Positions 32,908 to 57,303 of a stretch of 64,000 nt of DNA are shown in pieces (positions within the stretch are counted from its first letter, which is position 1; each line of letters begins with the position of its first letter). The notes under the pieces are model-generated. The model made no database searches and had not been told where the DNA came from. It saw only the letters and a list, made by a program, of their open reading frames with translations. Made by a program: the position numbers and the translations under genes. The stretch covers positions 197,807 through 261,806 of the IMG/VR virus record IMGVR_UViG_3300026097_000876; one strand, written 5' to 3'.

Positions 32908-33239
32908 CTGTAGAATTAAAACCAAAATGTTTTGAAGATCAGCAGATGGCTGTAACTAATAGAGGTCATTTAATACCTTGTTGTTATTGCGATACTCAGC
33001 ATACTATGAATGATTTAGAATTTCAAAAACTATTGAAAGTTAGCAAAATAAGCGACTATAACAGTATAGAAGAAATTTTGAATACAAACGAATGGAAAGA
33101 GTTTTATAAAAATCTGCAACAAAATATTGGGCCTCGTGCTTGTCAGACTGTCTGTGCTAAAAATAAAAAAGACCCGTTAAATATTAAAGAAATAGAAGAC
33201 GGTCGAACAGGAAAAATTATACATACTAGAATTGCATAG
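32904..33239 (+). CDS. Stand-alone SPASM/twitch-like Fe-S protein
   Basis: RGHLIPCCYC...ACQTVC in 111 aa, directly downstream of a radical SAM gene. Confidence 0.65.
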   Translation: MTVELKPKCFEDQQMAVTNRGHLIPCCYCDTQHTMNDLEFQKLLKVSKISDYNSIEEILNTNEWKEFYKNLQQNIGPRACQTVCAKNKKDPLNIKEIEDGRTGKIIHTRIA

Positions 33240-33258
33240 CAACATATGGAAGATTAAA

Positions 33259-33930
33259 ATGTTAGAAGAGTTAATGCTGAAAAGGCAACAAGTAAGATTT
33301 TTTGATAGAGAAAACTATCCTAGCGAAAAAATAATTTACTCAATCTTAGAAAAAACTTATCAAATAGTTCCATCTAAACAAAATTTAGTGCCTTACAAAG
33401 TCCATGTGTTAGGTCCAAGCATGGAAGAACATAAAAGAGAGTTATATCTTTTATCTTCTAAACAACAGCTAGGTGACAAGTTAAATTATAACGAACTTGC
33501 CAAACGTAATAGCGGAAATACACAGTTGTTGGCTCCTTATGTTCTACTTTTTGAAAAAAGATTACCAGAACCTAACGATTTTGTAAAAAAAGAAATGCTC
33601 CTAGGACATAAATTTAATGAATGTTTGCCCGAACAACAAAGAAATCAAAGGATAGCTACAGCTATCGAGGTGGGTATGTTTACAGCAATGCTATCTGGGT
33701 TTTGTATGGAGGAAGATATTTCTCTAAGTTATATAGGATGCCTTCCTGGAAACCCAGAAACCTACAAAAATAATCCTTCTGTCAATTTTGATTTTATCGA
33801 ACAACACATTTTTTTAGGGATAGGCATAGGTTACCAAGACTATTCTATCGAAGAAAATCTTAGATTATCTCGTTTACAAAATTGTGGAGAGATAAAACCT
33901 AAAAGTGATAATGTAATTGTTAAACATTAA
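33259..33930 (+). CDS. Nitroreductase-fold protein 4
   Basis: KRQQVRFFD; PSKQNLVPYKVHVLGP; IEVGMF; GIGIG. The ATG at 33259 is preferred over the TTG at 33232. Confidence 0.7.
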   Translation: MLEELMLKRQQVRFFDRENYPSEKIIYSILEKTYQIVPSKQNLVPYKVHVLGPSMEEHKRELYLLSSKQQLGDKLNYNELAKRNSGNTQLLAPYVLLFEKRLPEPNDFVKKEMLLGHKFNECLPEQQRNQRIATAIEVGMFTAMLSGFCMEEDISLSYIGCLPGNPETYKNNPSVNFDFIEQHIFLGIGIGYQDYSIEENLRLSRLQNCGEIKPKSDNVIVKH

Positions 33931-33935
33931 TGGTG

Positions 33936-33964
33936 TTGACAATTCATATTAATTAGTGTATAAT
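33936..33964 (+). promoter_or_regulatory. Consensus sigma70 promoter TTGACA-N17-TATAAT
   Basis: -35 at 33936-33941, -10 at 33959-33964; SD AGGA before the ATG at 33993. Confidence 0.85.
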
Positions 33965-33992
33965 ATAAGAAAATAAGTATAGGAAAATAAAA

Positions 33993-34829
33993 ATGTTTCT
34001 AACCCTTGAAGATTTAAAAGGTTCAGAATATCGTACAGTAGACTTTTATATGACAAAAAGTTGTAATAAGAGTTGCCATTATTGTACTGCATGGACTCTT
34101 GAAATGCGTAATCTTGATGTTGACATGGATTTTTTGCGTACTATTTTAGAAGGTCTTGCTCCTTATAAAACACGTATTTGTTTGCTCGGCGGTGAACCTG
34201 GACTTGTTAAGAACTTAAGAGAAGTTATTGCCGAAATTAAAAAGTATCCCAATCTAGTAGTACAGGTACTTTCTAACAGTCTTATACGTAAATTTTATCC
34301 AGAAGTATTAGAAGATCCTGAGATTATTTACATCGAACATTTAGTGTTGGACTTTTACGAAGATCGAATTGAAAAGTTAGGTAACTATGATTTCTTTGAA
34401 CCTAATGATCTAAACAATTATAATCTTATAATTGAAACACCTGGATACTTTGATTACAGAGACAAACATGATTTGTCTTATCTTATGCACAAAAATACAG
34501 AATTTAAAGAATATAATTCACGCTCTCCGGATTTCTTTTCAGATCATAAAATTGTACAAGCGCCAGAAATTGAAAGACGAGTATGTGCTAAGTTTCCGCA
34601 AGTTCCTGTGTTTGATTTTGAAATACAAAAAATTAGACATTGTAGCAGGAAAGTTATTAACGGTAGCCGTCAATTTGATGTTACTAAAGAAAATATTGAA
34701 AAGATGATGAACTACGAACTTTTTGAATTCGAAAACTATTGCAAAGGTTGTATGGATATTATTCCTCCGAGGCCAGTAGCACGTAGATTAGAAATATTAG
34801 AAAAAATAGCATTAGAAGATATCACATGA
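33993..34829 (+). CDS. Radical SAM protein with C-terminal twitch-like cysteines
   Basis: CNKSCHYC; LLGGEP; C-terminal VC...HC...YCKGC. Confidence 0.85.
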   Translation: MFLTLEDLKGSEYRTVDFYMTKSCNKSCHYCTAWTLEMRNLDVDMDFLRTILEGLAPYKTRICLLGGEPGLVKNLREVIAEIKKYPNLVVQVLSNSLIRKFYPEVLEDPEIIYIEHLVLDFYEDRIEKLGNYDFFEPNDLNNYNLIIETPGYFDYRDKHDLSYLMHKNTEFKEYNSRSPDFFSDHKIVQAPEIERRVCAKFPQVPVFDFEIQKIRHCSRKVINGSRQFDVTKENIEKMMNYELFEFENYCKGCMDIIPPRPVARRLEILEKIALEDIT

Positions 34830-36289
34830 AGTTTTATGCAGTAGCCTTAAATATGCACGATCATAATACATATGACGGTGTAACACACTATCAACTAGAA
34901 AGACACACCCGTGCTAAACATAATCTAAATTATAAAAATGTTCATGATCCAGAACCGAGTAAACGTTTTTTTGATAATTTTGTAAAGACTAATGATAAAG
35001 TACTTTGCTTTACTGTTTCTAATCTAGGACAAGAATTTGTATTAGACCGGATTGAAAAAAAATTCGGAAAAGACTTTTTAAACTTCAGACCTAGCCATAT
35101 CTGGGATTGTTATCATACCGATGATTTTTATTATATCGATCATCATCAAAGTCATGCTACCTATGCTCTTCTAAGTTCAGGATTTCCGGAAAGTGACATT
35201 CTTGCTATCGACGGCAGAGGTTGGCAATTTAATTGTATTTTTGTTAACAAAGAAGGAAGAATAAAAGATCTTACAGATGAATTATCTATTGGCGGACTTT
35301 GGAATAGGCTATCGCAAGATCTTGGTTTTGGATATTTAGGCGCAGGTAAAGTAATGGGTCTTGCTGGTTACGGTAAGTATGATCATAGGGTTCACGCTAT
35401 GTTAGAAGTATATCTCACTAATGATAATAACCTTCCTAACTGGTATAAAAAAATTATCGACAGCTGCAACAAAGAAGATATTGCTTTTACTCTACAATAT
35501 GTTACAGAAGAATTAATTAAAAAATATGTATATCCTCTCAAAACTAGTGACAATTTGTGTGTAGCAGGCGGAGTAGCATATAATGGCTACATGAATGAGG
35601 AATTTACTAAACATTATAAAAACGTACATGTACCGCCTGCTGTTGGTGACGAAGGTCAGGCAATAGGTACTTACATGCATGCCGAATATGTAGTAAACGG
35701 AAATGTACACATTCCTTGTGTATACTCTGGTGTTGAACATAAGTACACACTACCAGATACATTTGAAGATTTGAATATCCCTAAACTGGCACAACAAATA
35801 GCAGATGGCAAAATAGTAGGATGGTTCCAAGGAAAGAGTGAAAGTGGTAATAGAGCACTAGGCAATCGTAGTATACTTGCAGATCCACGCAATCCCGATA
35901 TTAAAGATATTATTAACAGTAAGATTAAACTACGTGAAGACTTTAGACCGTTTGCTCCTAGCGTACTAGAAGAACATTATACAGAATATTTTGATACTAA
36001 TCAGCCATCGCCTTATATGAGCAGGATTGTAAAAGTTAAAGGTAACATCATACCGGGCGTAACTCACGTAGACAGTACAGCAAGGATTCAAACTGTTAAT
36101 AAAACACAGAATCAAAAATTTTATGATTTAATTAACGAATTTTATAAAATTACAGGAGTTCCTATGTTACTTAACACAAGTTTTAACTGTCAAGAACCTA
36201 TTGTAGAAACTCCGCACGAAGCATATGAAACTTATAACAAAACTTCTTTGGATATTCTTGTTATTAATGATAAAGTGATTGAAAAATGA
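34826..36289 (+). CDS. Carbamoyltransferase (NodU/CmcH/TobZ family)
   Basis: HHQSHA; GKVMGLAGYG; AGGVAYN; GNRALGNRSILADPR; FRPFAP; HVDSTARIQ; LLNTSFN. Confidence 0.9.
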   Translation: MKFYAVALNMHDHNTYDGVTHYQLERHTRAKHNLNYKNVHDPEPSKRFFDNFVKTNDKVLCFTVSNLGQEFVLDRIEKKFGKDFLNFRPSHIWDCYHTDDFYYIDHHQSHATYALLSSGFPESDILAIDGRGWQFNCIFVNKEGRIKDLTDELSIGGLWNRLSQDLGFGYLGAGKVMGLAGYGKYDHRVHAMLEVYLTNDNNLPNWYKKIIDSCNKEDIAFTLQYVTEELIKKYVYPLKTSDNLCVAGGVAYNGYMNEEFTKHYKNVHVPPAVGDEGQAIGTYMHAEYVVNGNVHIPCVYSGVEHKYTLPDTFEDLNIPKLAQQIADGKIVGWFQGKSESGNRALGNRSILADPRNPDIKDIINSKIKLREDFRPFAPSVLEEHYTEYFDTNQPSPYMSRIVKVKGNIIPGVTHVDSTARIQTVNKTQNQKFYDLINEFYKITGVPMLLNTSFNCQEPIVETPHEAYETYNKTSLDILVINDKVIEK

Positions 36290-36891
36290 TAGACGAAATT
36301 ATTTTTAGAAATGTACTAAAAGAAATTAAACAAAATTCAGAATATGCTGACGATATTATTGATTCATTCAGTGACAATCAGTTTATTGCTAAACGCAAAG
36401 TTTTAGAATATGCTAATAGATTAAATATACTAGATAAAGATTCAGAAGTAATTATTTTTGGATCTTGGTACGGAAGTATTTTAATTCCTGGATTAGTTGA
36501 TAAAGTAAAAAAAATTAGTTGTATTGATATTGACAAACGAGTTTTACAAACTGCAAAAAATAGATTCTTCAAAGATTATACCAATATAGATTATATTGCA
36601 GGCAACGTATTTGATTTAGATCTCAAAAGATATCACACGGCTAATCTTTTTATAAACACGTCGTGCGAACATATGCCGTCGATGAAGGAATTTTTATACT
36701 GGCCTGACCAAACCCATTTTGTCTTCACAAGTAATGATATGTTCAACATCGAAGGACACATAAATTGTGTAAACAGTTTAGATGAATTTAAAGAACAATT
36801 GCCCGAACGTGCAGAAGTATTGTATGAAGAAGAAGTAGAGGATACCAGAGGCACACGTTATATACTAGTCGGAAAAATTAACGGTATTTAA
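36286..36891 (+). CDS. Class I SAM-dependent methyltransferase
   Basis: VIIFGSWYG motif I; CIDID; INTSCEH. Confidence 0.65.
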   Translation: MIDEIIFRNVLKEIKQNSEYADDIIDSFSDNQFIAKRKVLEYANRLNILDKDSEVIIFGSWYGSILIPGLVDKVKKISCIDIDKRVLQTAKNRFFKDYTNIDYIAGNVFDLDLKRYHTANLFINTSCEHMPSMKEFLYWPDQTHFVFTSNDMFNIEGHINCVNSLDEFKEQLPERAEVLYEEEVEDTRGTRYILVGKINGI

Positions 36892-38125
36892 TTCGTATAC
36901 TTCTTGTAAACTGATCTAATTTTTGATAAATTTCTTCTACAGTTTTGCCTAGTAGAATTAATTGTCCGTTTTGATGCCCTATACTTGCATTCCAATTGTC
37001 TGGTATTACACTCTTAGAAGTTAGTGTGCTACTAAAATGATGTACACTTTCATCTGCCTCAGGCCAGTCGATACTTTCAATTGTTCCGGGTGCAAATCTA
37101 AATTGTTTTCCTAAAGAATAATTAAACTGCGTATCATGTTTTTGCGTAAAGTCTGAAATATAGTCTTTCGAATTTAGCTTAACTAATTCTCGAGTTACAT
37201 TATAACCGTATATTTTATGAAAACTTGTTGCAGTATGACTACTACCAGGACGCAAATTAGTTTCAATTACGTTAATTACATTTAAATCTTTATCGTAAAA
37301 AAATTCTGTTCGTAGAGCACCGTTTTTGATTTCGAGAACATCTGTTAGTTGTTGTAAAATTGATAGTACTTCGTCTGTTAAGAATTTTGGATCACTAGGG
37401 AACAATGCTTCTTCGTAATAGAAATAAGGTAATCTTTCTTGCTCTAATTTGCTTTTTTGATCTCTAGCATAATGTGTGTAAGGTTTAATTATACCGTCTT
37501 GTACATAACAGTTTACACCACTAAAATAATCAGCATCTGTATATTGTTGAACTAGATAATAATCATATTTCTTATCTAAATTCCATCCATTTGAACGATC
37601 TTGATCATCCATGAATGATTTTAATTCAGCTGCATTATGTATTTGTTTAATTCCGTTGCTTCCTGCCCCGTAGTTAGGTTTTACAATACAGGGATACTCC
37701 AATGTTGATAAGTCTTTAATTTCGTCATATCGATAGGACCAGTCTGGTCTAGGCAAATTTTGATTTTCTAATAATTTATGCCATGCTTCTTTACTTGCAC
37801 AGTGTGTTGCAGCAACTTCTCCAATGCCCTTAAATCCCATACGAGTGTTTACACATGCCATAGCCATGCTAGCATCGTTAGTACATGGGTGTGTAACAGT
37901 CATACTAGCGCCACTAGTTTTTGCAAGATTTACTAATGCATCGATATCCATATAACTTATAATATGAAATTCGTCTATCATGTCTTTTACTGTGTCGTAA
38001 TAGTATTTGCTAGTAATATCCATAGGATGTGTTGCTACTATTTTATATCCAAGTGCTTGTGCTTCTCGCATATAAAGATAACTATCATCAAAAACACCAA
38101 TGTGTAATGCTACTTTATCCGCCAT
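36878..38125 (-). CDS. ATP-grasp ligase (L-amino-acid-ligase-like)
   Basis: PCIVKPNYGAGSNG; LVQQY; IETNLRPG; C-terminal small domain. Confidence 0.8.
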   Translation of the reverse strand: MADKVALHIGVFDDSYLYMREAQALGYKIVATHPMDITSKYYYDTVKDMIDEFHIISYMDIDALVNLAKTSGASMTVTHPCTNDASMAMACVNTRMGFKGIGEVAATHCASKEAWHKLLENQNLPRPDWSYRYDEIKDLSTLEYPCIVKPNYGAGSNGIKQIHNAAELKSFMDDQDRSNGWNLDKKYDYYLVQQYTDADYFSGVNCYVQDGIIKPYTHYARDQKSKLEQERLPYFYYEEALFPSDPKFLTDEVLSILQQLTDVLEIKNGALRTEFFYDKDLNVINVIETNLRPGSSHTATSFHKIYGYNVTRELVKLNSKDYISDFTQKHDTQFNYSLGKQFRFAPGTIESIDWPEADESVHHFSSTLTSKSVIPDNWNASIGHQNGQLILLGKTVEEIYQKLDQFTRSIRIKYR

Positions 38126-39569
38126 AAATATCTCTTATATCTTTGCCTGTAATTTTTTTATATCGTTCTACTAGAAATGTTGGTGAGTCTAACGCAAATT
38201 TGTAACCTAAATCTCTGCAATGATTGCGTAATCTAAACCATCTTTCAATTCTTACTTTTTGTGTGTTATCACCGATTTCCCATGCTCCTACATCGTCATA
38301 GTCTACACCCATTTCTTGAAACTGATCGAATAGCGGCGTGCCTGGATAGATTCGCATAGTTGCTCCGAGACTGACTTGAAAAACTGTTCCATCTTTTGCA
38401 TACTTGGCATTTCGAGTAAACATGTCCATAGTTTCTTGAAATTCTTCCTCGCCTTCGCCCGGGTATCCAATTAGCATCATCATTACAGTATCGATGCCGT
38501 TTTTAGAACATTGTTCCAAAGTGTAGTCAATATCAACAGCTCTAGCACCCTTTTTCATTGCATTAAGAACTTTTTGACTGCCGCTCTCGATACCTAACAG
38601 CATTCTAGTACATCCGCTCTTTGATAACTTTTCGTATATTTCTGGACCTTGCGAATTAGGAGGTCTCACAATAAATTGTCCTCCCCATTTTACACCATCT
38701 AAATTTTCTTCAATGAGTGTGTCCATCATTGCATCCATTTGGGGAATATTACCGTTTAGTAAACTATCTGTAAAATAAAACTCTTTTATTCCTGGATGCG
38801 TCTTAACTTGATGTATAATTTCTTTTGCAATAGTTACTCCGCTTTTACTAGTAAAAGATGGCCAGCGTTTGCCTACATCACAAAACTTACAACGTCTAAT
38901 ACACCCTCTACTTCCAGTTAAGTATAACAGATCTGTTCCTTTTGGATCTTCAAATGGATCTCTAAACAAATGACTATATTGTGACAAGTCATAATCTGTA
39001 TAATCAGCAAACGGAAGTGAATCTAACTCTTTCATCTGTATAGGAAACTTTCCGTTTATTCCTGGATAGTCTGTATTTCCGTTAAGCAGATGTAGTATAG
39101 GATTTTCTCCTTCTGCTTCCACATATGCATAAATTCTATCTTGTTTAAGATTAGTAGGCCCGTAATCAGGTGATGCACCCGGTCCTCCTAATATAACTTT
39201 AACTTCGGGCAATCTAATAAGTATTTCGTCTAAGAACAAGTCACACATTACAAGTTGCCAATGACTTAATAATGTTATACCAACAAACTTTGGATTATAA
39301 CCTGCAATTTTCTCTACAGCCTGTTCTACTAACGGAACAAATATATGTTTAACTTTTTCAAAATATTTCTTGTTAATTAGTGTTTGGTCGTTGTCTAGCC
39401 AAAGATGAGCATATTCGTCTTTTACAATATTCCAAAATTCTACATTAAAGTCAATACATTTACTAGTATAACCATGTTCTTCGACAACTGCCTTTAGTGC
39501 TGCTGGCCCAATAAGAGGGCTTTGTACTTCAAATTTTGGAATACTAATAAAAACAATATCTTTATTCAT
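38115..39569 (-). CDS. Cobalamin-binding radical SAM enzyme (class B methyltransferase-like)
   Basis: N-terminal B12 domain (FVGIT...ILGGP...EGE); GSRGCIRRCKFC; FTDS; GIESGS; GYPGE. Confidence 0.85.
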   Translation of the reverse strand: MNKDIVFISIPKFEVQSPLIGPAALKAVVEEHGYTSKCIDFNVEFWNIVKDEYAHLWLDNDQTLINKKYFEKVKHIFVPLVEQAVEKIAGYNPKFVGITLLSHWQLVMCDLFLDEILIRLPEVKVILGGPGASPDYGPTNLKQDRIYAYVEAEGENPILHLLNGNTDYPGINGKFPIQMKELDSLPFADYTDYDLSQYSHLFRDPFEDPKGTDLLYLTGSRGCIRRCKFCDVGKRWPSFTSKSGVTIAKEIIHQVKTHPGIKEFYFTDSLLNGNIPQMDAMMDTLIEENLDGVKWGGQFIVRPPNSQGPEIYEKLSKSGCTRMLLGIESGSQKVLNAMKKGARAVDIDYTLEQCSKNGIDTVMMMLIGYPGEGEEEFQETMDMFTRNAKYAKDGTVFQVSLGATMRIYPGTPLFDQFQEMGVDYDDVGAWEIGDNTQKVRIERWFRLRNHCRDLGYKFALDSPTFLVERYKKITGKDIRDIYGG

Positions 39570-40344
39570 AAGTTCGATTTACCCTTCCTAAGTATATGAG
39601 AACAGCATATACTATAGTAGTTATCACACTTACTGATAAGACACTTGGACTAATGATGTCAGTAACATAACTCCACATAATAATTGGAAGAGTTTGAGTA
39701 CTATGATCTAATAACAACAACGCTACAATAAACTCGTCAAAACTAGTAATAAACGCAAGAGAACATCCTGCAAGCAATCCGGGCAACATAACTGGAAGTT
39801 GTATATCTTTTAATATTTGAAAACTATTTGCACCGCATAGTCTAGCACTTTTTGCAATATTTTCATCATAGTTATTTAGACTACTTAGCGTCATTAAAAT
39901 TACATAAGGAACACATAAAACAGTATGTGCTATAATAAGATTGATAAAACTGTTAGTAAACCCTATATCATTAAAAAAGAAAATCCAGCCAAGGCCAATA
40001 ATGATACTCGGTATTACAATAGGACTGATTATTACACTTAGAACTATTCCGTTTCTATATTGGTTCAACCACAACGCCGCAGGAACAGATAGTAGTATAC
40101 AACTAATAACAGTATATGCTCCTACTTGAAAACTAGTTACAATACTTTTATACCACATAGGATCTGTAAATAATTGGTTATACCATTTCAAGCTGAACTC
40201 AAAATCAGAAATTTTAAAATAGTTTCCACCGTCAACGCTAAACAAAATAATAACCAACATAGGCATTAACAAATATAAGAACATGCCATAAGCAAATAAT
40301 CTAAGCACGGGCGTCTCCTTTAAAGTTAATACGATAATAAACAT
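39562..40344 (-). CDS. potC: Polyamine ABC transporter permease, PotC-like
   Basis: FSLKWY; IIAHT; SARLCGA EAA loop; FITSFDEF; QTLP. Confidence 0.8.
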   Translation of the reverse strand: MFIIVLTLKETPVLRLFAYGMFLYLLMPMLVIILFSVDGGNYFKISDFEFSLKWYNQLFTDPMWYKSIVTSFQVGAYTVISCILLSVPAALWLNQYRNGIVLSVIISPIVIPSIIIGLGWIFFFNDIGFTNSFINLIIAHTVLCVPYVILMTLSSLNNYDENIAKSARLCGANSFQILKDIQLPVMLPGLLAGCSLAFITSFDEFIVALLLLDHSTQTLPIIMWSYVTDIISPSVLSVSVITTIVYAVLIYLGRVNRTYE

Positions 40345-41287
40345 AAAACAACATTAAACTAGTTGATAGCATAATAACTGTTAGCGCACTTGCTAGGCCC
40401 CAGTTTAATGTATATTGAACTTGTCTAATTATTTGTTCTGTAACAAACAGGCCTTTACTTCCACCTAACAGACTTGGAGTAATATAGTATCCAGTAACAC
40501 TCATAAATGTTAGTATGGTGCTGTTTGCAATACCTTTGATTGTTTGCGGCAAATACACATATCTAAATGTTTGAAATTTATTAGCACCTGAAATTGTACT
40601 TACTTTAATTAAATCGTTATTAACATTTTTCATAGCAAGATATATAGGTAATACACTTAGTGGCAGTGCGATATATACACTGCCTATATAAATTGCTGTA
40701 ATTGTATTCATAAGATCGAAAGGTTGTAACAATAATATCCAACTAACTGTACGACTTAAGAAGCTACTAAACAGCGGAATCAACACAACAAATAGTGCAA
40801 TCTTAGCTGCTTTGCCTTTTAGTTTAGTAAGATAATATGCAAGAGGATACGCTACTACTAAGCAAATGGCTGTAATAATTGCACTAAGAAGATATGTCCT
40901 TCCTATAACTTTTAAGTATAAGTCGTTAAATGCACGTTTAAAATTAGCAAATGTATAAGGCTTTACTTCTTGTTCTATTACACTCCAAAATGCAGGGTCT
41001 TGCCATCCAGGGTGTTCTAAACCTTTTCTAAACATACTTCGTGTTTTGTGATAGTGATGATTAAGGTAGGTGATAGATCTACGACTGTCCTCACGGGCTA
41101 AGTCACTTTTTATAGCTTCAGTCCGGTCTCCGCCGTTAACTACGTAGTCGGTTATGTTTGGAAGATAACGTTCAACAGTTGTGTTGTAAACACTATTTTT
41201 AAGAATTTCACCTAGTGGAAGGAGAAAGAACACTGCTAGAAAAAATACTAGCGGTATAATCTTTCCATGTTTCGCAAACAAATTCAT
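40301..41287 (-). CDS. potB: Polyamine ABC transporter permease, PotB-like
   Basis: ICLVVAYPLAY; SFLSRTVSW; ISGA..FQTF.YVYLP; YYITPSLLGG; NWGLASAL. Confidence 0.8.
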   Translation of the reverse strand: MNLFAKHGKIIPLVFFLAVFFLLPLGEILKNSVYNTTVERYLPNITDYVVNGGDRTEAIKSDLAREDSRRSITYLNHHYHKTRSMFRKGLEHPGWQDPAFWSVIEQEVKPYTFANFKRAFNDLYLKVIGRTYLLSAIITAICLVVAYPLAYYLTKLKGKAAKIALFVVLIPLFSSFLSRTVSWILLLQPFDLMNTITAIYIGSVYIALPLSVLPIYLAMKNVNNDLIKVSTISGANKFQTFRYVYLPQTIKGIANSTILTFMSVTGYYITPSLLGGSKGLFVTEQIIRQVQYTLNWGLASALTVIMLSTSLMLFYVYYRINFKGDARA

Positions 41288-41951
41288 TTACAAAATCACT
41301 CCTAGGATTATCAAGAATTTCTGTAGGACTGCCTACTTGCTCTACTTTTCCTTGATTCATAATAACAATAGTGTCGCACATATTAAATGCTTCAGTGAAG
41401 TCGTGTGTGACGTACACTACTGTTGTATTTTTAAGTAGCTGTTTAATATCTTTTTGTAATTTAATTCTTAGCTTTAAGTCTAGCGATGCTAAAGGTTCGT
41501 CCATTAGTATAACATCTGGATTATATACTAATGCCCTTGCAATTGCAACTCGCTGTTGTTGCCCACCGCTTAATTGTTTAGGATATTTATCAGCATGTTC
41601 TTCCATTCCTATAACATTTAAAATATTAGATACAGCGGATGTATTCTTGCCTTTTACTCTCAATGGATATGCTATATTTTCATAAGCAGTCATATTAGGA
41701 AATAAACTAAAGTTTTGAAACACCATTCCTAGTGGTCTTTTATTACTACTTAGGCTAGTAATATCCAAACCGTTAACTATTACTTGTCCACAGTCTGGTG
41801 TTTCAAACCCTGTAATGCAATTAAGTAGGGTACTTTTGCCGCTGCCACTAGGTCCTAGAACAGCGACATTCGATCCAGAAGAAACATTAAAAGTTACATC
41901 ATCGAGAACTTTATCTCGAAATGTTTTGCTAATGTTCTTTATTTCTAGCAT
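41208..41951 (-). CDS. potA: ABC ATPase, PotA-like, lacking the C-terminal TOBE/regulatory domain
   Basis: Walker A GPSGSGKS; VFQNFSLFP; LSGGQQQRV; ILMDEP; VTHD; the core ends at NPRSDFVNEF. Confidence 0.85.
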   Translation of the reverse strand: MLEIKNISKTFRDKVLDDVTFNVSSGSNVAVLGPSGSGKSTLLNCITGFETPDCGQVIVNGLDITSLSSNKRPLGMVFQNFSLFPNMTAYENIAYPLRVKGKNTSAVSNILNVIGMEEHADKYPKQLSGGQQQRVAIARALVYNPDVILMDEPLASLDLKLRIKLQKDIKQLLKNTTVVYVTHDFTEAFNMCDTIVIMNQGKVEQVGSPTEILDNPRSDFVNEFVCETWKDYTASIFSSSVLSPSTR

Positions 41952-43036
41952 TAGTCTAAGAGCCAGGCTTCCCAGCGTTCATTGATGCGTTCGCCATTGT
42001 CAGCCCACCATGCGCCGTCACGTGGAATGCTACCAGTATAGTTATTAGGGTTAGTAACCATTTCGGCTTCCATGTCTGATCCAGTGTCTACCGAAGTCCA
42101 GTTGCCTGAATTTAAATCAATTGAACTCTTACGTGTAGGCGAGTAAGGAATAATACGACTAATTAGTGCTAGTGTTTCTGTACTAGTAGCATGTTGCAAA
42201 AACGCCTTTACTTCAGGAGTCATTTGTCCTTTTGCTACTACCCAAGGAGAAACTGTATAAATTTGTGCATCCCAAATTTGCTCAATGCTTTGTCCGTCTA
42301 CGTTCTTGGCTTTCCAAAAACGTCCATTATAGCTTGCTAAAATTTGTACTTGTCCTGCACTCAATTGTTGAATACCAGCGGCTGCTTTGTCCCACCATAC
42401 AATATGATCTTTAATAGTATCTAACTTAGCAAATGCACGATCGAGTCCTTCGTCAGTTGCTAGTACATCACGTACAATGTTTCGATCCACTCCATCGGCA
42501 ATCAGTGCCCATTCTAAGTTATTGTAAGGACGGCGTTGTAATCCTCGCTTTCCTGGAAACTGTTCAACATCAAATACATCGTAAATTGTTTGTGGTGCGT
42601 TGTTAGCGTATGTTTCTGGATCGTATCCAAACTGAATACTGTATACTGCCTGTGGTGCCACACAATCTTTTAGCATACCAGGAAGAAAGTCCTCACTAGG
42701 TAGTGTACCGTCTGGTGCAGGCAGCAACACATCGTCGTGATTAAAGTTTTCTACTAAACCGTCTTCGCATGCAATAGCAAGTGCTTCCTGAGGAATATCA
42801 ATTACATCATATGTAATGTTTCCTGTTTCAATTTGTGTACGCAATGCTGCTAGTGCAGAGTGTGCATTTTTGATAACGTTTACAGTTACATCTGGATTCT
42901 GCTCAATAAACGGATCAATTGCTGCTCTTTGTTGTGCTTCGCCCCATGCACCGCCATAATTTACAATATTTACAGTACTGTCAGCATATGCTGAACTTGC
43001 AACAAGTGCTAGAACTGTCATAAAGGTATATTTCAT
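41951..43036 (-). CDS. potD: Periplasmic polyamine-binding protein, PotD/PotF-like
   Basis: Signal peptide MKYTFMTVLALVASSAYA; YGGAWG.AQ; FPGKRGL; LEWALIADG; DRAFAKLD.IK..IVWW; SD AGGAG. Confidence 0.8.
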   Translation of the reverse strand: MKYTFMTVLALVASSAYADSTVNIVNYGGAWGEAQQRAAIDPFIEQNPDVTVNVIKNAHSALAALRTQIETGNITYDVIDIPQEALAIACEDGLVENFNHDDVLLPAPDGTLPSEDFLPGMLKDCVAPQAVYSIQFGYDPETYANNAPQTIYDVFDVEQFPGKRGLQRRPYNNLEWALIADGVDRNIVRDVLATDEGLDRAFAKLDTIKDHIVWWDKAAAGIQQLSAGQVQILASYNGRFWKAKNVDGQSIEQIWDAQIYTVSPWVVAKGQMTPEVKAFLQHATSTETLALISRIIPYSPTRKSSIDLNSGNWTSVDTGSDMEAEMVTNPNNYTGSIPRDGAWWADNGERINERWEAWLLD

Positions 43037-43060
43037 TTCATCTCCTGTAAGTCTTACTAT

Positions 43061-43095
43061 AGTAATTATCTACGTATATAACTTAGATATTTACT
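43061..43095 (-). promoter_or_regulatory. Imperfect inverted repeat in the potD leader containing TAAATA and the TATATACGTAG motif
   Basis: Arms 43061-43072 and 43084-43095 pair at 11/12; TAAATA at 43088-43093 (minus strand); motif at 43070-43080. Confidence 0.4.
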
Positions 43096-43110
43096 TCTGA
43101 CATACTAATA

Positions 43111-43139
43111 ATAATACTACAATCAGCTCTAGTAGTCAA
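43111..43139 (-). promoter_or_regulatory. sigma70-type promoter TTGACT-N17-TATTAT for the potD operon
   Basis: -35 at 43134-43139 and -10 at 43111-43116 on the minus strand. Confidence 0.6.
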
Positions 43140-43167: not shown

Positions 43168-44022
43168 ATGTCATATAAAGTAACACATAATCACCATCTT
43201 AGCGTTCGCAAAACAACAGATTATATTGTAAAATTAGGTCGTTGTGAGAACATGCCTATGGATTTTAAATCTGAAGCATTACGAGCTGCTAAGTTAATAG
43301 CAAAAGAATCTAATAATATATGGATTAGTTACAGCGGCGGTATAGACAGTGAGTTTATTATTCAAGTGTTTCTTGAAGCAGGCATCCAATTTAGAGTTGC
43401 CACAATTGTTATGAAAGACGGATCTAACGATTACGATCTACAGCACAGTAGAAATTTTTGTAAACGTATGGGTATCAAGCTACACGAATTTGAAATTGAT
43501 TTAGAAGAGTTTTATAAAAATGATCTAGAAACATATGCTGTTGCAACTAATTGTATTAGTCCACAGTTTCCGGTGCATATGTGGTTATGGGATCAACTAG
43601 ATGGATTTATAGTTGCAGGCCACGGTGATCCAATCTTTAAACGTAAAGATTCTAGATGGTATCTTCAAATTCAAAAAAAAGAAGACAGCGTATTTAGATA
43701 TGCTCAGTGGAGAAATAGAAACATGGCTCCGGGATTTTACGTATATACTCCGGAACTTCTACTAAGTTTTATGCTAGAAAAAGAAGTAAGTAATATGTTT
43801 ATTGCTCCTAAGTTAGCAGGGTTAAGAGATATTGCACAAGTCAAACATCTGGTTTATTCTAAATATTACGATATGGTCGAAAGAGAAAAAAGAACTGGCT
43901 TTGAGTTAGTAGATAACTTAAACAATGAATATAAAATACATTTAGAAAATACAATACCCGGACATGGCGTATTTCTACAATCAGTAGAAGACCTATTACA
44001 TAGAATTTGGCCTAAACTATGA
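43168..44022 (+). CDS. PP-loop (N-type ATP pyrophosphatase) family protein
   Basis: WISYSGGIDSE PP-loop; no QueC-type C-terminal cysteine cluster. Confidence 0.65.
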   Translation: MSYKVTHNHHLSVRKTTDYIVKLGRCENMPMDFKSEALRAAKLIAKESNNIWISYSGGIDSEFIIQVFLEAGIQFRVATIVMKDGSNDYDLQHSRNFCKRMGIKLHEFEIDLEEFYKNDLETYAVATNCISPQFPVHMWLWDQLDGFIVAGHGDPIFKRKDSRWYLQIQKKEDSVFRYAQWRNRNMAPGFYVYTPELLLSFMLEKEVSNMFIAPKLAGLRDIAQVKHLVYSKYYDMVEREKRTGFELVDNLNNEYKIHLENTIPGHGVFLQSVEDLLHRIWPKL

Positions 44023-44468
44023 TTATTAAACAAGTAGATTTTGAAACAGTGTTACCTGCGTGGGAAAACAATCTTTGGCCTAATCGCAAAGATCCTATTA
44101 AACCTACAAATAATATTTGTTATCTAGGTGGAAGAGATAAAGATATTAATAATCAAACACCTGTATTTTTTGCCGTGTACGATAATAAAACTATAGTAGG
44201 TGTAAACAGCGGCTTTCCTACACTACACGGAGGATTTCGTAGTAGAGGTATTTGGGTTGATCCGGCATATAGAGAAAAAGGTGTTGGGGCAATGTTGCTA
44301 AATGCTGTAATTGATTATGCTCGAGAGAATGAATATTCTTATGCATGGAGTATGCCAAGACAAAGTGCTCTATCAGCATATACTAATGTAGGCTTTGAGC
44401 AAACAAGCGATTTTTTTGACGAAGGCGTAGAGTTTGGTCCTAACTGTTTTGTAAGGATTGATCTATGA
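44019..44468 (+). CDS. GNAT acetyltransferase
   Basis: RGIWVDPAYREKGVG motif A; YTNVGF. Confidence 0.85.
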   Translation: MIIKQVDFETVLPAWENNLWPNRKDPIKPTNNICYLGGRDKDINNQTPVFFAVYDNKTIVGVNSGFPTLHGGFRSRGIWVDPAYREKGVGAMLLNAVIDYARENEYSYAWSMPRQSALSAYTNVGFEQTSDFFDEGVEFGPNCFVRIDL

Positions 44469-45937
44469 CTGATGTAGTTTTAGTTACTTTACCTAAAATG
44501 GAAATTAGAGCACCCTTAATTGGCCCGGCTGCTCTTAAAAGTATATGCGAAGCAGATGGGTACTCTGTACATTGCGTTGACTTTAATATCGAACTATATC
44601 ATCAATTGCGAACACAAGTTCCTGAATGGTGGATTTATAATGATCAAACATTTATGCAAGACGATTTATTTGACGAAGCATGGACTACTATATTAGAACC
44701 TATAGTTCACAGCTGGTGTAAAAAACTACAAGACCTAAATCCTAAAGTAATTGGTGTTACAGTATTAAGCATGTGGACCGAACGTATCTGTAATAAGTTT
44801 TTGCAAACACTAGAATTATATTGTCCAGATACCCGTGTAGTATTAGGGGGACCGGGAACACAGCCAGCATATGGTCCAAAGATGCTAGAAGCAAAAAAAA
44901 TTGATGCATACATTACAGGCGAAGGCGAAGTTAGTTTTTTAGAATATCTTAGAGGCAACAAATATTATCCTGGAATAAATGGCAATCCTGCTGAACAGAT
45001 TGGAGATATGAATACATTACCGTTTCCTGACTATAGTGATTTTGATTTATCAAAATATAGCAGCACTTGGTGGGAACCTCACAAAGAGCCAACAGGGTGT
45101 AAATGGTTGTATATTACAGGCACTCGGGGGTGTATTAAGCGATGCACTTTTTGTAATGTAGGATCAATATGGCCAAAGTTTGTTAGCAAAACAGGTGAAA
45201 CTATTGCTAAAGAAATAAAACATTATATGGATACTACAGGAGTAACTCACTATTATTTTACTGACAGTTTACTCAATGGTAATGTAAAGAATCTAGAAGA
45301 AATGGTAGACGCTATTATTTCTTTAGGTATTAAGCCTACTATAAAAGGACAATGGATTGCTCGTGGTAAAGATTTAATTAATAGTGAGCTATGGAAAAAG
45401 ATGGGCAGAGCAGGTTTCAAACAACTCTTAGTGGGTATCGAAAGTGGAAGTTATAAAACACGCAACGAAATGAAAAAGGGTGTTAGAGAAGAAGATATAG
45501 AATATACATTTGAACAAGCAAGCAAAAACAAAATTAGATGTATACCGTTGCTTATGGTAGGATATCCAACAGAGACAGCAGAAGATTTTGAGGAAAATAT
45601 TAAATTTTGGACTAGGTATAAAAAATATAATGACAATGGTACTATTCTAAAACCTAGTGTGATGGCAACGAATATTTTACCAGACACTCCTCTACATCAT
45701 AAATTTACCGGAAACGGACTAGAGTATGACGATTTAGGTAACTGGGTATATAAAGACAACACTATGAAAGTTCGAATCGAACGCTGGTTTAGATATCGAG
45801 ACGAGGCACATCGCTTAGGTTATGAACTTACTTTAGATACTCCTAAACATCTCATAAGAGAATACAAGCGTATTACTGGAATAGATCTTAGTGAAGAATA
45901 CAAACTCAAAGATACAGAAGAAATATGGAATGATTGA
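44465..45937 (+). CDS. Cobalamin-binding radical SAM enzyme, paralogue of 38115
   Basis: PLIGPAALK; VLGGP; GTRGCIKRCTFC; FTDS; GIESGS; GYPTE. Confidence 0.85.
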   Translation: MTDVVLVTLPKMEIRAPLIGPAALKSICEADGYSVHCVDFNIELYHQLRTQVPEWWIYNDQTFMQDDLFDEAWTTILEPIVHSWCKKLQDLNPKVIGVTVLSMWTERICNKFLQTLELYCPDTRVVLGGPGTQPAYGPKMLEAKKIDAYITGEGEVSFLEYLRGNKYYPGINGNPAEQIGDMNTLPFPDYSDFDLSKYSSTWWEPHKEPTGCKWLYITGTRGCIKRCTFCNVGSIWPKFVSKTGETIAKEIKHYMDTTGVTHYYFTDSLLNGNVKNLEEMVDAIISLGIKPTIKGQWIARGKDLINSELWKKMGRAGFKQLLVGIESGSYKTRNEMKKGVREEDIEYTFEQASKNKIRCIPLLMVGYPTETAEDFEENIKFWTRYKKYNDNGTILKPSVMATNILPDTPLHHKFTGNGLEYDDLGNWVYKDNTMKVRIERWFRYRDEAHRLGYELTLDTPKHLIREYKRITGIDLSEEYKLKDTEEIWND

Positions 45938-45964: not shown

Positions 45965-46567
45965 ATGATAAACACACTTTATAAAGTACCAATTTGGATA
46001 CAAGACAATACATTGCCGCAAGATAAATTAGATATGCTAGAACAAGCATGCTACGACAAGTGTCAACCATTGTCAGATTATCCAGATGAATTTAATCCTG
46101 ATATTTTTAAATTTTCTCGTTCTAACAAAATAAATGTTCATACGGAGCCTGAATTTAAAGAAGTTACTAACTTAATGTTAACAGCCGCAAGAAATATGAT
46201 GTTAGAAATGAGTTACACACAAGAACAGGCTCAGCGTCTTAGAATTGTTAACAGCTGGTTTGCAATATATAAAAATAAAGATAATCTACCTATGCATACA
46301 CACCGTGATAGTTTCTTTTCAGGAGCATATTATATTAAAGATGTTACAGATTGTAAATTACGATTTATTCATGACATCTATAGAAATACACCTTACCCAG
46401 AAGATTTACATAATGAATGGGGCAAAAATGTTACAGACTTTGATTGTAAAGACGGACGAATTATTATATTTCCTAGTGACTGTATACACGGAATTGATCA
46501 GCTTAATAGTAATAAGCCCGATAATGAACCTATTAAAGTTATGTTATCGTATAATTTTAATTTTTAA
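45965..46567 (+). CDS. 2OG-Fe(II) oxygenase-like protein (TIGR02466-type)
   Basis: HTHRDSFFSGAYY; IFPS..IHG; MLSYN. Confidence 0.7.
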   Translation: MINTLYKVPIWIQDNTLPQDKLDMLEQACYDKCQPLSDYPDEFNPDIFKFSRSNKINVHTEPEFKEVTNLMLTAARNMMLEMSYTQEQAQRLRIVNSWFAIYKNKDNLPMHTHRDSFFSGAYYIKDVTDCKLRFIHDIYRNTPYPEDLHNEWGKNVTDFDCKDGRIIIFPSDCIHGIDQLNSNKPDNEPIKVMLSYNFNF

Positions 46568-47058
46568 ACACAGGCAACAATATGAATTCGATCCTCAAAA
46601 CTTCCGTTTAATGCTAGGTGCTTTAATCTAGTATCTAACCAATATAAATGACCTACTGATTCCATTCTTAATATTTCTTCGTCTACTATAAACATACAAT
46701 TATTATTTGTAGTTACAGGAATATGCATTCGCGGGGTTGGATCTGTGTGATATGAATAACATTCTTTAGAGCGCAGTGTCATTACTCTAGTTCTATATAA
46801 ATTATTTTCTTTAATAATACTATTAATATATGGTATATCGTAGTAACATTCGGTAATATCTGTTTCTTCAAAATGTGTTTTAGCAGTTCTTTCTTTGTTT
46901 ATAGGATCAAACACATCAAAATCACCTCTCCATGTTTGTAGATTATTGTTAGAATTTATAGCGTAGTTAATACTTTCTAATTCACTAATAATCTTTTCAA
47001 CATCATATTTTTTGCCTGTTTTTATAAATTTATTCACGTACCTTTTCCCTTCGGACAT
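46564..47058 (-). CDS. 2OG-Fe(II) oxygenase (aspartyl beta-hydroxylase-like)
   Basis: YHTD HxD; RMHIP; HLALN; RIHIV. Confidence 0.7.
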   Translation of the reverse strand: MSEGKRYVNKFIKTGKKYDVEKIISELESINYAINSNNNLQTWRGDFDVFDPINKERTAKTHFEETDITECYYDIPYINSIIKENNLYRTRVMTLRSKECYSYHTDPTPRMHIPVTTNNNCMFIVDEEILRMESVGHLYWLDTRLKHLALNGSFEDRIHIVACV

Positions 47059-47553: not shown

Positions 47554-47907
47554 ATGGCATGGGGCTATCATTTATTAGTGGACTGTAAGCAAGGCGACAT
47601 TCCTAGTATTACTAGCAAAGAAAATGTATCTACTTTTGTTAGGAAATTAGTAAAAGGAATTGACATGGTAGCATACGGTGATTTAATGATTGAACGCTTT
47701 GCTACACATGATCCTGATAAAGCCGGTATTAGTTTTTGTCAAATGATTGAAACGTCAAACATTACAGGACATTTCGTCGAACTTAATGGAAACTTTTATA
47801 TTGATGTTTTTAGTTGTAAACCTTATGATACTCATACAGTGCTGGATTTAATACAAGAATATTTTAATCCAGCATCTGTTAGCACAACTTTTATTAATAG
47901 AGATTAA
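47554..47907 (+). CDS. speD: Pyruvoyl-dependent S-adenosylmethionine decarboxylase proenzyme family
   Basis: GYHLLVDC; IETSNITGHF (self-cleavage serine); IDVFSC; 117 aa. Confidence 0.8.
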   Translation: MAWGYHLLVDCKQGDIPSITSKENVSTFVRKLVKGIDMVAYGDLMIERFATHDPDKAGISFCQMIETSNITGHFVELNGNFYIDVFSCKPYDTHTVLDLIQEYFNPASVSTTFINRD

Positions 47908-51767: not shown

Positions 51768-51799
51768 ATTGCACCTTATTTGTTAATTTCTATAGTATA

Positions 51800-51828
51800 A
51801 CTATAACAGTATTTACAGAGTAAGTCAA
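51800..51828 (-). promoter_or_regulatory. sigma70-type promoter TTGACT-N17-TATAGT
   Basis: -35 at 51823-51828, -10 at 51800-51805. Confidence 0.65.
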
Positions 51829-51833
51829 GAGAT

Positions 51834-51854: not shown

Positions 51855-51855
51855 G

Positions 51856-57290: not shown

Positions 57291-57303
57291 TCTGCAACCT
57301 CTT

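Follow-up and report, generated by a model that had tools for sequence, protein, structure and literature searches.

An uncultured marine jumbo phage, distantly related to PA5oct, carries a complete and well-conserved four-gene ABC importer whose predicted binding pocket appears suited to a small carboxylate-bearing solute rather than to polyamines, and which is inherited together with phage ligase and acetyltransferase genes that probably use what it imports. The analysed stretch (the window) comprises 64,000 nucleotides, positions 197,807 to 261,806 of IMG/VR record IMGVR_UViG_3300026097_000876. The observation in the initial annotation, that a complete importer lies among phage genes, was confirmed, whereas its interpretation was only partly supported: the importer is intact and belongs to a phage, but neither the polyamine assignment nor an alphaproteobacterial origin was supported.

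Results

Gene content and genomic context

Four consecutive open reading frames without internal stops encode a substrate-binding protein (SBP), an ATPase and two permeases (Table 1). The SBP has a Sec-type signal peptide ending AYA-D and no lipobox, and the ATPase contains Walker A at residue 33, the Q-loop at 77, LSGGQ at 127, Walker B at 147 and the H-switch at 181. Hydropathy analysis predicted six helices in permease 2 and five above threshold in permease 1, and both permeases have EAA-like loops. The periplasmic insert of the PotB-like permease, which had been regarded as alphaproteobacterial, is real, but it is a trait of the whole bacterial operon family (median 420 aa) and not of one class.

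Table 1. Features of the importer region and its surroundings (window coordinates).
Position	Strand	Feature	Length (aa)	Observations
14.8-20.3 kb		Tail-fibre genes		
36878-38125	-	ATP-grasp ligase, L-amino-acid-ligase-like; last gene of the importer transcription unit	415	Pfam ATP-grasp_4; profile against PDB: 4dim 4e-14, L-amino-acid ligase 3vot 6e-9, Ddl, BacD; adjacent to the importer in L003, L007, L008 and L095
38115-39569	-	B12-binding radical SAM enzyme A, between permease 2 and the ATP-grasp gene	484	Pfam Radical_SAM plus B12-binding; best NCBIfam hits are class-B methyltransferases, all below cut-off
39562-40344	-	Permease 2, PotC-like	260	BPD_transp_1; EAA-like loop at residues 165-184
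40301-41287	-	Permease 1, PotB/PotH-like	328	BPD_transp_1; periplasmic loop of roughly 98 residues after TM1; EAA-like loop at residues 228-247; longest ORF overlaps the ATPase gene by 80 nt, an overlap conserved in L003 and L004
41208-41951	-	ABC ATPase, nucleotide-binding domain only	247	ABC_tran only, E 6.6e-38
41951-43036	-	Periplasmic SBP, cluster-D fold	361	Pfam SBP_bac_8, E 2.6e-39; AF2 model pLDDT 92.6; predicted pocket Y27, W31, A130, Y132, Y236, R239, S263, Y298
43041-43139	-	Leader of the importer operon, in a 131-bp divergent intergenic region shared with the PP-loop/GNAT operon		Sigma-70-like promoter TTGACT-17-TATTAT (43139-43111) and AGGAGA ribosome-binding site (43046-43041), consensus match only
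43168-44022	+	PP-loop ATP pyrophosphatase	284	Invariant SGGIDS motif; weak Pfam NAD_synthase match; fold nearest the beta-lactam synthetase/asparagine synthetase domain, TtuA and TilS, with low TM of 0.3-0.47; orthologues next to the SBP in L003, L005, L007, L008 and L095
44019-44468	+	GNAT acetyltransferase	149	Pfam Acetyltransf_1; weak PDB hits to the amino-acid N-acetyltransferases YncA and PAT; fused to the PP-loop domain in other family members (P0152 and P0172)
44465-45937	+	B12-binding radical SAM enzyme B		
45965-46567	+	2OG-Fe(II) oxygenase		In L003 and L004 a 2OG oxygenase homologue lies between the SBP and ATPase genes
46564-47058	-	AspH-like hydroxylase		This and the next two genes: orthologues beside the module in L003, L005/L095, L007 and L012
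47034-47486	-	Conserved protein	150	
47554-47907	+	Pyruvoyl AdoMet_dc-family decarboxylase		
47904-48899		Mtd_N fibre gene		

The phage context is supported by the fibre genes, and by an AAA ATPase, a DUF2201 protein and an exonuclease shared with PA5oct-like jumbo phages at 49% identity. The same 21 kb is identical in three other assemblies, and was found in IMG/VR contigs of 72 and 262 kb and in an ENA contig of 279 kb. About 17 diverged relatives on phage contigs (52-91% SBP identity) carry the same importer; individual relatives are designated here by L numbers. L003 has 79% nucleotide identity and comes from the same sample, while more distant relatives (L004, L005/L006, L007, L008/L009, L012, L013 and L095) have the same importer among phage genes, and L095 repeats the downstream order Mtd_N, DUF2201, AAA and exonuclease seen in the window.

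It had been proposed that the leader carries phage motifs, but this was not confirmed, since no k-mer of the 131-bp leader recurs in the window beyond single chance matches. The leader does hold promoter-like and ribosome-binding sequences, although promoter-like matches in this AT-rich region are no more frequent than in shuffled sequence, and no Rfam element was found in 36-48.5 kb.

Phage ownership and descent

The initial annotation also noted that the SBP gene is more GC-rich than that of permease 2, which is correct (41.6% versus 31.7%), but this is not a sign of foreign origin. The GC3 of the four genes is 0.22-0.27, against a window mean of 0.26 +/- 0.06, and the difference sits in codon positions 1 and 2 and so reflects amino-acid composition. 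The dN/dS values are 0.06-0.11 for all four genes (0.06-0.09 for the SBP), with dS above 1, indicating purifying selection. In a tree with 80 bacterial sequences the phage SBPs form one clan (SH-aLRT 100) on a stem of about 0.8 substitutions per site, and no bacterial genome exceeds 46% identity. The clan branches outside a mixed gamma- and alphaproteobacterial set, and the top identities are shared by Halomonadaceae and unclassified Pseudomonadota, so that an alphaproteobacterial origin is not supported or cannot be told from these data. Descent from a bacterial four-gene operon is indicated by the finding that homologues of all four proteins occur in the same ATPase-SBP-permease-permease operon in 64 of 80 bacterial loci.

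We also considered whether the segment is a host fragment mis-joined to a phage contig, which had been named beforehand as a finding that would overturn the observation, or a recently captured operon that is decaying. The three 100%-identical assemblies may derive from the same sample and are thus not fully independent, and the ATPase is truncated relative to bacterial homologues, with its gene overlapping that of the permease. However, the same junctions occur in diverged relatives from other samples, genes specific to the phage clade are interleaved with the ABC genes, and, together with the phage-like GC3, the low dN/dS, the distance from bacterial genomes and the intact motifs, this effectively refutes an artefact or relic.

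Such systems are rare in sequenced phages. A tblastn search of 50,697 phage records with the permease gave only 28 weak hits, mostly unannotated fragments, and the SBP gave none.

Family assignment and the predicted binding pocket

The permeases score best in NCBIfam against PotB and PotC, and PotA is among the top hits of the ATPase, but none of the four proteins reaches the Pot cut-offs. The scores lie 2-4 fold below them, with 256 against an equivalog cut-off of 482, 118 bits against 348 for PotB and 111 bits against 326 for PotC, and the SBP matches no NCBIfam model. PotD, PotF and SpuD were not found in a sequence search of the PDB at E <= 0.01, and by fold alignment they (the canonical PotD and SpuD among them) are only 13-15% identical. 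"Polyamine" is only a family label.

The nearest solved relative is the SAR11 "PotD" in complex with GABA (8jv1, of the series 8jv1-8jv4; TM 0.85, 32% identity, phmmer E 4.6e-53). We infer from the entry title and from PMC11485210 that this is SAR11_1336, which binds glycine betaine (Kd 2 nM), DMSP and GABA and not polyamines (PMC11485210), showing the annotation of this SBP subfamily to be wrong for that protein. The NGR, WDAQ and Y-P-R motifs are shared, and two Cys residues that are invariant in our 55-sequence alignment are also present in 8jv1. GABA and opine binding proteins of the same SBP cluster (Pf622/iGABASnFR, Atu4243, MotA and AgtB) gave fold matches with E 1e-24 to 1e-27, at an identity of only 23-30%, and share with the phage SBP the conserved carboxylate-binding Arg and stacking aromatic residues.

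The eight residues of the Pf622 GABA site (PMC12999171) were mapped onto the window SBP. This assignment rests on pairwise sequence alignment to a homologue at 30% identity and on an AF2 model, without inspection of its coordinates, and should be considered as a prediction. R239, which corresponds to the carboxylate-binding R205 of Pf622, and Y236 and Y298 are invariant in 55 of 55 sequences, and Y132 in 54 of 55. The bacterial homologues have W27, Y31, D263 and G264 in 40 of 40 sequences and E/D at 261 in 38 of 40, whereas the phage clade has W31 and S/T263 in 15 of 15, T261 in 14 of 15 and Y27 in 13 of 15. SAR11 PotD has D and E where the phage clade has T261 and S/T263, and the amine-binding Asp (D228 in Pf622) is Ser in the window protein and Ser/Thr throughout the phage clade. 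As SAR11 PotD keeps the acidic residues that the phage lacks, its ligand range cannot simply be transferred.

Loss of the ATPase regulatory domain

The ATPase aligns to positions 2-237 of the roughly 350-380-residue PhnT2, PotA and CysA models and lacks the C-terminal TOBE regulatory domain. The phage ATPases are 243-247 aa, except the basal L007 copy (326 aa, TOBE_2), whose SBP also keeps E261, while the bacterial homologues have a median of 370 aa and carry TOBE_2.

Co-inherited enzymes

The genes for the SBP, PP-loop enzyme, GNAT, ATPase, both permeases and the ATP-grasp are adjacent in every sufficiently long relative, but no bacterial locus has the three enzymes within 6 kb. The ATP-grasp matches L-amino-acid ligases and BacD over its full length, and had only 24 homologues, all metagenomic, in a search of 5.8 billion proteins. 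Adjacency shows co-inheritance and not a shared pathway, and the PP-loop, GNAT and (in one case) ATP-grasp genes also occur in other phage contigs with no importer in the stretches recovered.

Discussion

We favour the reading, to which we assign a probability of roughly 55%, that this is a functional, phage-adapted, binding-protein-dependent type I ABC importer of the polyamine/opine/phosphonate (POPT-like) branch, carried by a jumbo myovirus that infects a Gram-negative host. In this view the operon would be transcribed from its own sigma-70-like promoter, the SBP would be exported by the host Sec system to the periplasm, capture its ligand and dock on the PotB/PotC-like heterodimer in the inner membrane, and a dimer of the 247-residue ATPase would drive uptake. 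Without the TOBE domain the pump is probably free of host-type feedback control. Our data establish the integrity of the genes, their ownership by the phage, purifying selection, the family relationships and the substitutions in the pocket, while transport and ligand binding themselves, the ligand class, the promoter, the deregulation and the coupling to the neighbouring enzymes are inferred from sequence.

The ligand is probably not a polyamine and is more likely a small solute bearing a carboxylate, since the Arg that binds the carboxylate in GABA-binding relatives is invariant and surrounded by aromatic residues (Y27, W31, Y132, Y236 and Y298), and the two acidic residues that bacterial relatives use for the amino or ammonium group of the ligand have been replaced in the phage lineage. 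This is the opposite of what a polycation binder needs. The alternative proposed initially is that putrescine or spermidine is brought in to neutralise and condense a 260-280 kb genome during packaging, complementing the AdoMet decarboxylase of the phage. A polyamine theme is kept alive by the Pot-like family hits, by the annotation of bacterial homologues as "putative spermidine/putrescine" proteins, by conservation of the AdoMet_dc-family gene in L003 and L005/L095, and by L007, which has two AdoMet_dc genes and an arginase-family gene 8 kb away. However, no aminopropyltransferase was detected in the window, and together with the low family scores and the pocket this makes the polyamine reading unlikely.

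A stand-alone osmolyte or nutrient importer of the glycine betaine, DMSP or GABA type, acting as a classical auxiliary metabolic gene to sustain host turgor, energy, or nitrogen and sulfur supply during a long jumbo-phage infection and without a link to the neighbouring enzymes, also appears doubtful. The ligands of SAR11_1336 are in line with this, an aromatic-rich pocket with Arg suits zwitterionic osmolytes, the relatives come, judging by sample names, from marine or coastal samples, and the bacterial homologues come largely from halophilic or marine genera. On the other hand, the specific replacement of acidic residues that are conserved in the 40 aligned bacterial homologues and present in SAR11 PotD points to a changed ligand, and the tight, rearranged interleaving with the PP-loop, GNAT and ATP-grasp genes across lineages at 52% SBP identity is hard to explain without a functional link.

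In most lineages the importer also travels with B12-radical-SAM enzymes, 2OG/AspH-type oxygenases and an AdoMet_dc-family decarboxylase, and its most likely role is to supply an external precursor to this putative phage-encoded ligation and tailoring pathway. By analogy only, the NAGGN osmolyte pathway places the same three chemistries side by side, with N-acetylation and ATP-grasp peptide ligation (Ngg, GNAT plus ATP-grasp) and PP-loop amidation (AsnO, an asparagine-synthetase-type amidotransferase), but no NCBIfam NAGGN model was matched at E <= 1e-5 and the PP-loop protein of the phage lacks a glutaminase domain.

The importer can be compared to several known systems. It shares its four-component architecture with the proteobacterial operon family of SAR11 PotD, from which it differs, besides the pocket and the ATPase, in being encoded by a virus, in a permease 1 that is about 90 aa shorter, and in a rearranged gene order, with the SBP separated from the ATPase by other genes in the relatives. 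With E. coli PotABCD and PotFGHI it shares the type I arrangement of one SBP, two BPD_transp_1 permeases and one ATPase, but it has no PotA C-terminal domain. Phages often carry a lone PstS, and one 2026 preprint (bioRxiv 10.64898/2026.10.24.761521) reports 15 complete ABC systems (SBP, ATPase and permease) next to PspA in huge phages. Whether or not that set includes the present clade, the importer described here is not next to PspA, belongs to the Pot-like branch, is conserved across a deep phage clade and is interleaved with ligase, acetyltransferase and radical-SAM genes.

The importer genes and their phage context

The window contains four intact, co-directional genes for a substrate-binding protein (SBP), an ABC ATPase and two permeases, and the observation of a complete four-gene importer made in the initial annotation therefore holds. 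Its interpretation is only partly supported, since the importer belongs to a phage but the assignment to polyamine transport is not borne out by our data. The ATPase has Walker A, Q-loop, LSGGQ signature, Walker B and H-switch motifs at residues 33, 77, 127, 147 and 181, and both membrane subunits are BPD_transp_1 proteins with EAA-like loops, at residue 228 in permease 1 and 165 in permease 2, and with 5-6 predicted helices. Permease 1 has a periplasmic loop of about 98 residues after TM1. The SBP has a two-lobe fold in a predicted model with pLDDT 92.6, and a Sec signal peptide without a lipobox is found in all members of the phage clade. These features are those of a type I SBP-dependent ABC importer, ATP-driven uptake of a ligand being inferred from sequence alone. 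The ATPase stop and the longest permease-1 ORF overlap by 80 nt in different frames, an overlap that is conserved in the two close relatives L003 and L004, whereas the more distant relatives L005 and L008 have a 4-nt overlap; the true start of permease 1 is uncertain, because gene callers chose versions of 291-315 aa. Upstream of the SBP gene lies a divergent intergenic region of 131 bp, which holds a sigma-70-like promoter (TTGACT-17-TATTAT) and an AGGAGA ribosome-binding site, but promoter-like matches are not enriched over shuffled sequence, so this is only a plausible start. The claim in the initial annotation that the leader carries phage motifs was not confirmed, as no motif of the leader recurs elsewhere in the window, and a search for a riboswitch that might have named the ligand gave no Rfam hit at E <= 1 in 36-48.5 kb.

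Location of the importer genes and of other features noted in the window and in related contigs (L numbers denote contig loci, P numbers proteins)
Feature	Location	Strand	Remarks
SBP	window 41951-43036	-	Pfam SBP_bac_8; signal peptide ending AYA followed by D
ABC ATPase	window 41208-41951	-	ABC_tran, E 6.6e-38
Permease 1, PotB-like	window 40301-41287	-	Pfam BPD_transp_1 (E 1e-15 and 5e-16 for the two permeases)
Permease 2, PotC-like	window 39562-40344	-	Pfam BPD_transp_1
Overlap of ATPase gene and longest permease-1 ORF	window 41208-41287; L003 8043-8122; L004 12362-12441		80 nt
Giant ORF, 4694 aa	window 115-14199	+	Only Pfam hit is a single FG-GAP repeat
Tail-fibre genes	window 14.8-20.3 kb		
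Island of small enzymes	window 21247-36891	+	Long and co-directional
Radical-SAM-like genes of the island (at least five)	window 24617, 27808, 32269, 33993; SPASM piece at 32904		
DegT/DnrJ sugar aminotransferase	window 29117-30190		In the island
NodU/CmcH-type carbamoyltransferase	window 34826-36289		In the island
201-aa protein	window 36286-36891		Weak generic methyltransferase similarity only
2OG-Fe(II) oxygenase	window 45965-46567		
2OG-Fe(II) oxygenase between SBP and ATPase genes	L003 6743-7378; L004 11083-11697		45% identical to window 45965-46567
Mtd_N fibre gene	window 47.9 kb		
MoxR-like AAA ATPase and DUF2201 protein	window 50451-52944	-	DUF2201 protein is metallopeptidase-like plus VWA
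Group with GTP cyclohydrolase I	window 56079-62151	-	
Weak radical-SAM/Fer4_12 ORF	window 56079-56978		In the group with GTP cyclohydrolase I
GTP cyclohydrolase I	window 58222-58908		
Two AdoMet_dc-family genes flanking an arginase/agmatinase-family gene	L007 1370-3005		8 kb from the importer
PP-loop family and GNAT/PP-loop pairs in other phage contigs (proteins P0152, P0172, P0265)	L098 8001-9437; L100 7507-9608		

The window is phage DNA, carrying tail-fibre genes, an Mtd_N fibre gene, an AAA ATPase/DUF2201 pair and an exonuclease, and its AAA ATPase is 49% identical to that of PA5oct-like Pseudomonas jumbo phages. The 21 kb around the operon is 100% identical in three other contigs, two IMG/VR viral contigs of 72 kb and 262 kb and one ENA contig of 279 kb, although these may be re-assemblies of one sample. 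The stronger evidence comes from diverged relatives. L003 is a 79%-identical relative in the same JGI sample, and the relatives L004, L005/L006, L007, L008/L009, L012, L013 and L095 have SBPs 52-91% identical to that of the window; all carry the same importer among phage genes, and L095 repeats the downstream order of Mtd_N, DUF2201, AAA and exonuclease. The phage identity of L007, a contig of 104 kb, rests however only on weak PHROG hits. The higher GC of the SBP gene (41.6%) was rejected as a signal of recent transfer, since the difference lies in codon positions 1-2, and GC3 of the four genes (0.22-0.27) equals the window mean (0.26 +/- 0.06). Pairwise dN/dS against L003 and L004 is 0.06-0.11, with dS above 1, and no genome among 185,579 species representatives encodes an SBP more than 46% identical. 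The possibility of a chimeric host assembly, named beforehand as a condition that would refute the observation, is therefore excluded for practical purposes, as is a decaying capture.

Origin and reduction of the proteins

In a maximum-likelihood tree of 97 SBPs, the 17 phage-contig sequences form one clan (SH-aLRT 100), separated by a stem of about 0.8 substitutions per site from 80 bacterial sequences in which Gamma- and Alphaproteobacteria are intermixed. As the phage clan sits outside this mixed set, no donor class can be named, and the alphaproteobacterial origin proposed in the initial annotation was not retained. In 64 of 80 bacterial loci, homologues of all four phage proteins lie in one operon ordered ATPase-SBP-permease-permease, which suggests descent from such an operon. 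The phage versions are all smaller, the ATPase, permease 1, permease 2 and SBP being 247, 328, 260 and 361 aa, against bacterial medians of 370, 420, 283 and 368 aa. The ATPase has lost its TOBE domain, which among the phage copies is kept only by L007, the basal phage branch. It aligns only to positions 18-251 of the 378-residue PotA model and gives no TOBE hit, and thus lacks the C-terminal regulatory domain of the PotABCD/PotFGHI transporters. The loss of TOBE suggests that the pump escapes feedback control.

Ligand class inferred from the binding protein

The polyamine label is a family-level label only. The top NCBIfam hits are PhnT2/PotA for the ATPase and PotB/PotH and PotC/PotI for the permeases, which together with a cluster-D SBP fold places the system in the polyamine/opine/phosphonate-type (Pot-like) ABC branch. 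The scores are however 2-4 fold below the curated cut-offs of the Pot equivalogs (PotA 256 against 482, PotG 215 against 613, PotB 118 against 348, PotH 101 against 489, PotC 111 against 326 and PotI 77 against 476), and the SBP matched no model. The best structural match of the predicted SBP model is 8jv1, entitled SAR11 PotD in complex with GABA (TM 0.85, 32% identity), followed by the opine binders MotA and AgtB and the GABA binders Atu4243 and Pf622, while PotD, VcPotD1 and SpuD appear only at 13-15% identity. A literature search for the PDB codes 8JV1-4 found nothing relevant, and the entry title was taken from the structural search. Clifton et al. showed that SAR11_1336 (potD), annotated as a spermidine/putrescine binder, actually binds glycine betaine (Kd 2 nM), DMSP and other osmolytes (PMC11485210).

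The eight GABA-site residues of Pf622 (W9, T13, F100, Y102, W202, R205, D228 and Y264; PMC12999171) were mapped onto the window SBP by sequence alignment, and all eight fit a constant numbering offset, which validates the mapping. The carboxylate-binding Arg (R239) and two aromatic residues (Y236 and Y298) are invariant in 55 of 55 phage and bacterial sequences, and Y132 is kept in 54 of 55. The 40 bacterial homologues are fixed for W27, Y31, D263 and G264, where D263 is the equivalent of the amine-binding D228, and 38 of 40 have E/D at 261. The phage clade has W31 and S/T263 in 15 of 15 sequences, T261 in 14 of 15 and Y27 in 13 of 15, while the basal L007 copy still has E261. From this alignment we infer that the lineage remodelled its pocket stepwise after capture. 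Compared with 8jv1, the Arg and most aromatic residues are kept, but the acidic pair (D and E in 8jv1) is T261/S263 and positions 27 and 31 are swapped, so that the binding-site residues of the SAR11_1336-type broad osmolyte SBP, which 8jv1 is inferred to represent, are not conserved. A pocket with Arg, aromatic residues and no acidic pair argues against a polycation and for a carboxylate-bearing ligand whose other end is not a simple primary amine, although this is inferred from homology mapping without inspection of model coordinates, and the mapping does not place the other conserved acidic residues (D77, E175 and D256).

The polyamine reading keeps some weight, since an AdoMet_dc-family gene is conserved in the island around the importer and L007 has two such genes flanking an arginase/agmatinase-family gene, a possible phage polyamine-synthesis trio. 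A spermidine synthase role for the 201-aa protein was considered, but only weak generic methyltransferase similarity was found. A stand-alone osmolyte importer is also possible, as the relatives appear from sample names to be marine or coastal, and the bacterial homologues come largely from halophilic or marine genera. The pocket changes and the gene linkage described below argue against both, though not conclusively. A phosphonate or phosphinate pathway, prompted by PhpK-like and PhnT2-like best hits, was rejected, since no PEP mutase turned up among the ORFs scanned and all those hits are far below cut-off.

Linked enzymes and possible role

Seven genes travel together in every sufficiently long relative, down to 52% SBP identity, namely those for the SBP, a PP-loop protein of 284-314 aa with an invariant SGGIDS motif, a GNAT, the ATPase, both permeases and an ATP-grasp protein of 410-415 aa. 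Most lineages also interleave B12-radical-SAM and SPASM enzymes, 2OG and AspH-type oxygenases and an AdoMet_dc-family decarboxylase, and the position of a 2OG-Fe(II) oxygenase gene between the SBP and ATPase genes in the two closest relatives shows recent gene shuffling inside the module. None of the 80 bacterial loci has the three enzymes (PP-loop, GNAT and ATP-grasp) nearby. The ATP-grasp has only 24 homologues in a search of 5.8 billion proteins, all metagenomic, and as a profile it matches L-amino-acid ligases (3vot), BacD and Ddl over its full length. The predicted PP-loop model (pLDDT 77) is nearest the beta-lactam synthetase/asparagine synthetase domain, TtuA and TilS, with low TM scores. 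This protein belongs to a large family of 1597 representative clusters, and none of the 10 sampled carries an informative name. Some members are fused to a GNAT domain, at either end, which ties these two activities together. Related GNAT and PP-loop genes occur with several AspH-like hydroxylases in other phage contigs, one of which (L100) also has a fatty-acid-desaturase-like protein and a sulfotransferase, and no importer lies in the stretches recovered there. Membership of the NAGGN synthesis system was rejected, since neither the ATP-grasp nor the PP-loop protein gave a hit to the Ngg or AsnO family models in NCBIfam at E <= 1e-5.

We therefore read the importer as an added supply line for a putative phage ligation and tailoring pathway. 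The integrity of the four genes, their place in a phage genome, the purifying selection acting on them and the residue substitutions rest directly on the analysis, whereas uptake itself, the class of ligand, the escape from feedback control and the coupling to the neighbouring enzymes are inferred. A more far-reaching and tentative possibility, which we consider less likely than not, is that a clade of marine jumbo phages carries a self-contained pathway for import and tailoring, in which a deregulated ABC importer, with a binding pocket re-specified after capture from bacteria, would be combined with a phage-specific L-amino-acid-ligase-like ATP-grasp, a GNAT/PP-loop pair, B12-radical-SAM methylases and oxygenases. 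Together these would convert an environmental solute into a new small molecule, or into a covalent modification of virion, DNA or host envelope, and this would be a virus-encoded metabolic route that begins outside the cell.

Relation to known viral transport genes

Phage auxiliary genes for uptake are usually single binding proteins such as PstS, which plug into the pump of the host, whereas here a virus brings the whole machine and has kept it under purifying selection through deep divergence. Complete ABC systems in huge phages were noted in a 2026 preprint, in which 15 cases lie next to PspA. Cultured phages essentially lack them. DNA similarity to 50,697 phage records gave only short, chance-level ATPase matches, tblastn with the SBP and the ATP-grasp found nothing, and BFVD holds no close viral SBP, the best match having TM 0.41. 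What is new is a deep phage clade that keeps the whole importer, its pocket, re-specified as judged from the alignment, its truncated ATPase and its linkage to phage-restricted enzymes. The removal of the regulatory domain and the change of the predicted ligand-contacting residues make the system a natural case of viral re-engineering of a transporter, and one that is amenable to direct testing with four genes and one soluble protein. It is also a caution for viromics, since a spermidine/putrescine transporter label on viral contigs would feed wrong conclusions about polyamine or nitrogen cycling, when the only characterised member of the subfamily binds osmolytes and the phage version differs again. 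The tight linkage to about 24 known copies of a phage-restricted ATP-grasp ligase, and to a large unnamed PP-loop/GNAT family, points to uncharted virus-encoded chemistry.

Other gene content of the window

The giant ORF sits directly upstream of the tail-fibre genes and is possibly a giant virion or fibre protein. The island of small enzymes contains, besides the genes listed in the table, two nitroreductase-like proteins, a kinase-like protein and many ORFs with no Pfam match, and together with the importer module it forms a roughly 27-kb biosynthetic-looking block between tail-fibre genes. GTP cyclohydrolase I lies near the weak radical-SAM/Fer4_12 ORF, an HhH-GPD glycosylase-like protein, a HIT protein, a phosphoribosyltransferase, a second 2OG oxygenase and a cysteine-dioxygenase-like protein, which could be part of a deazapurine or other nucleotide-modification route. 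The MoxR-like AAA ATPase paired with the DUF2201 protein has homologues in PA5oct, Phosso, Atu_ph07 and SCTP-2 jumbo phages, and the PHROGs label of its partner, HNH endonuclease, looks like a misnomer.
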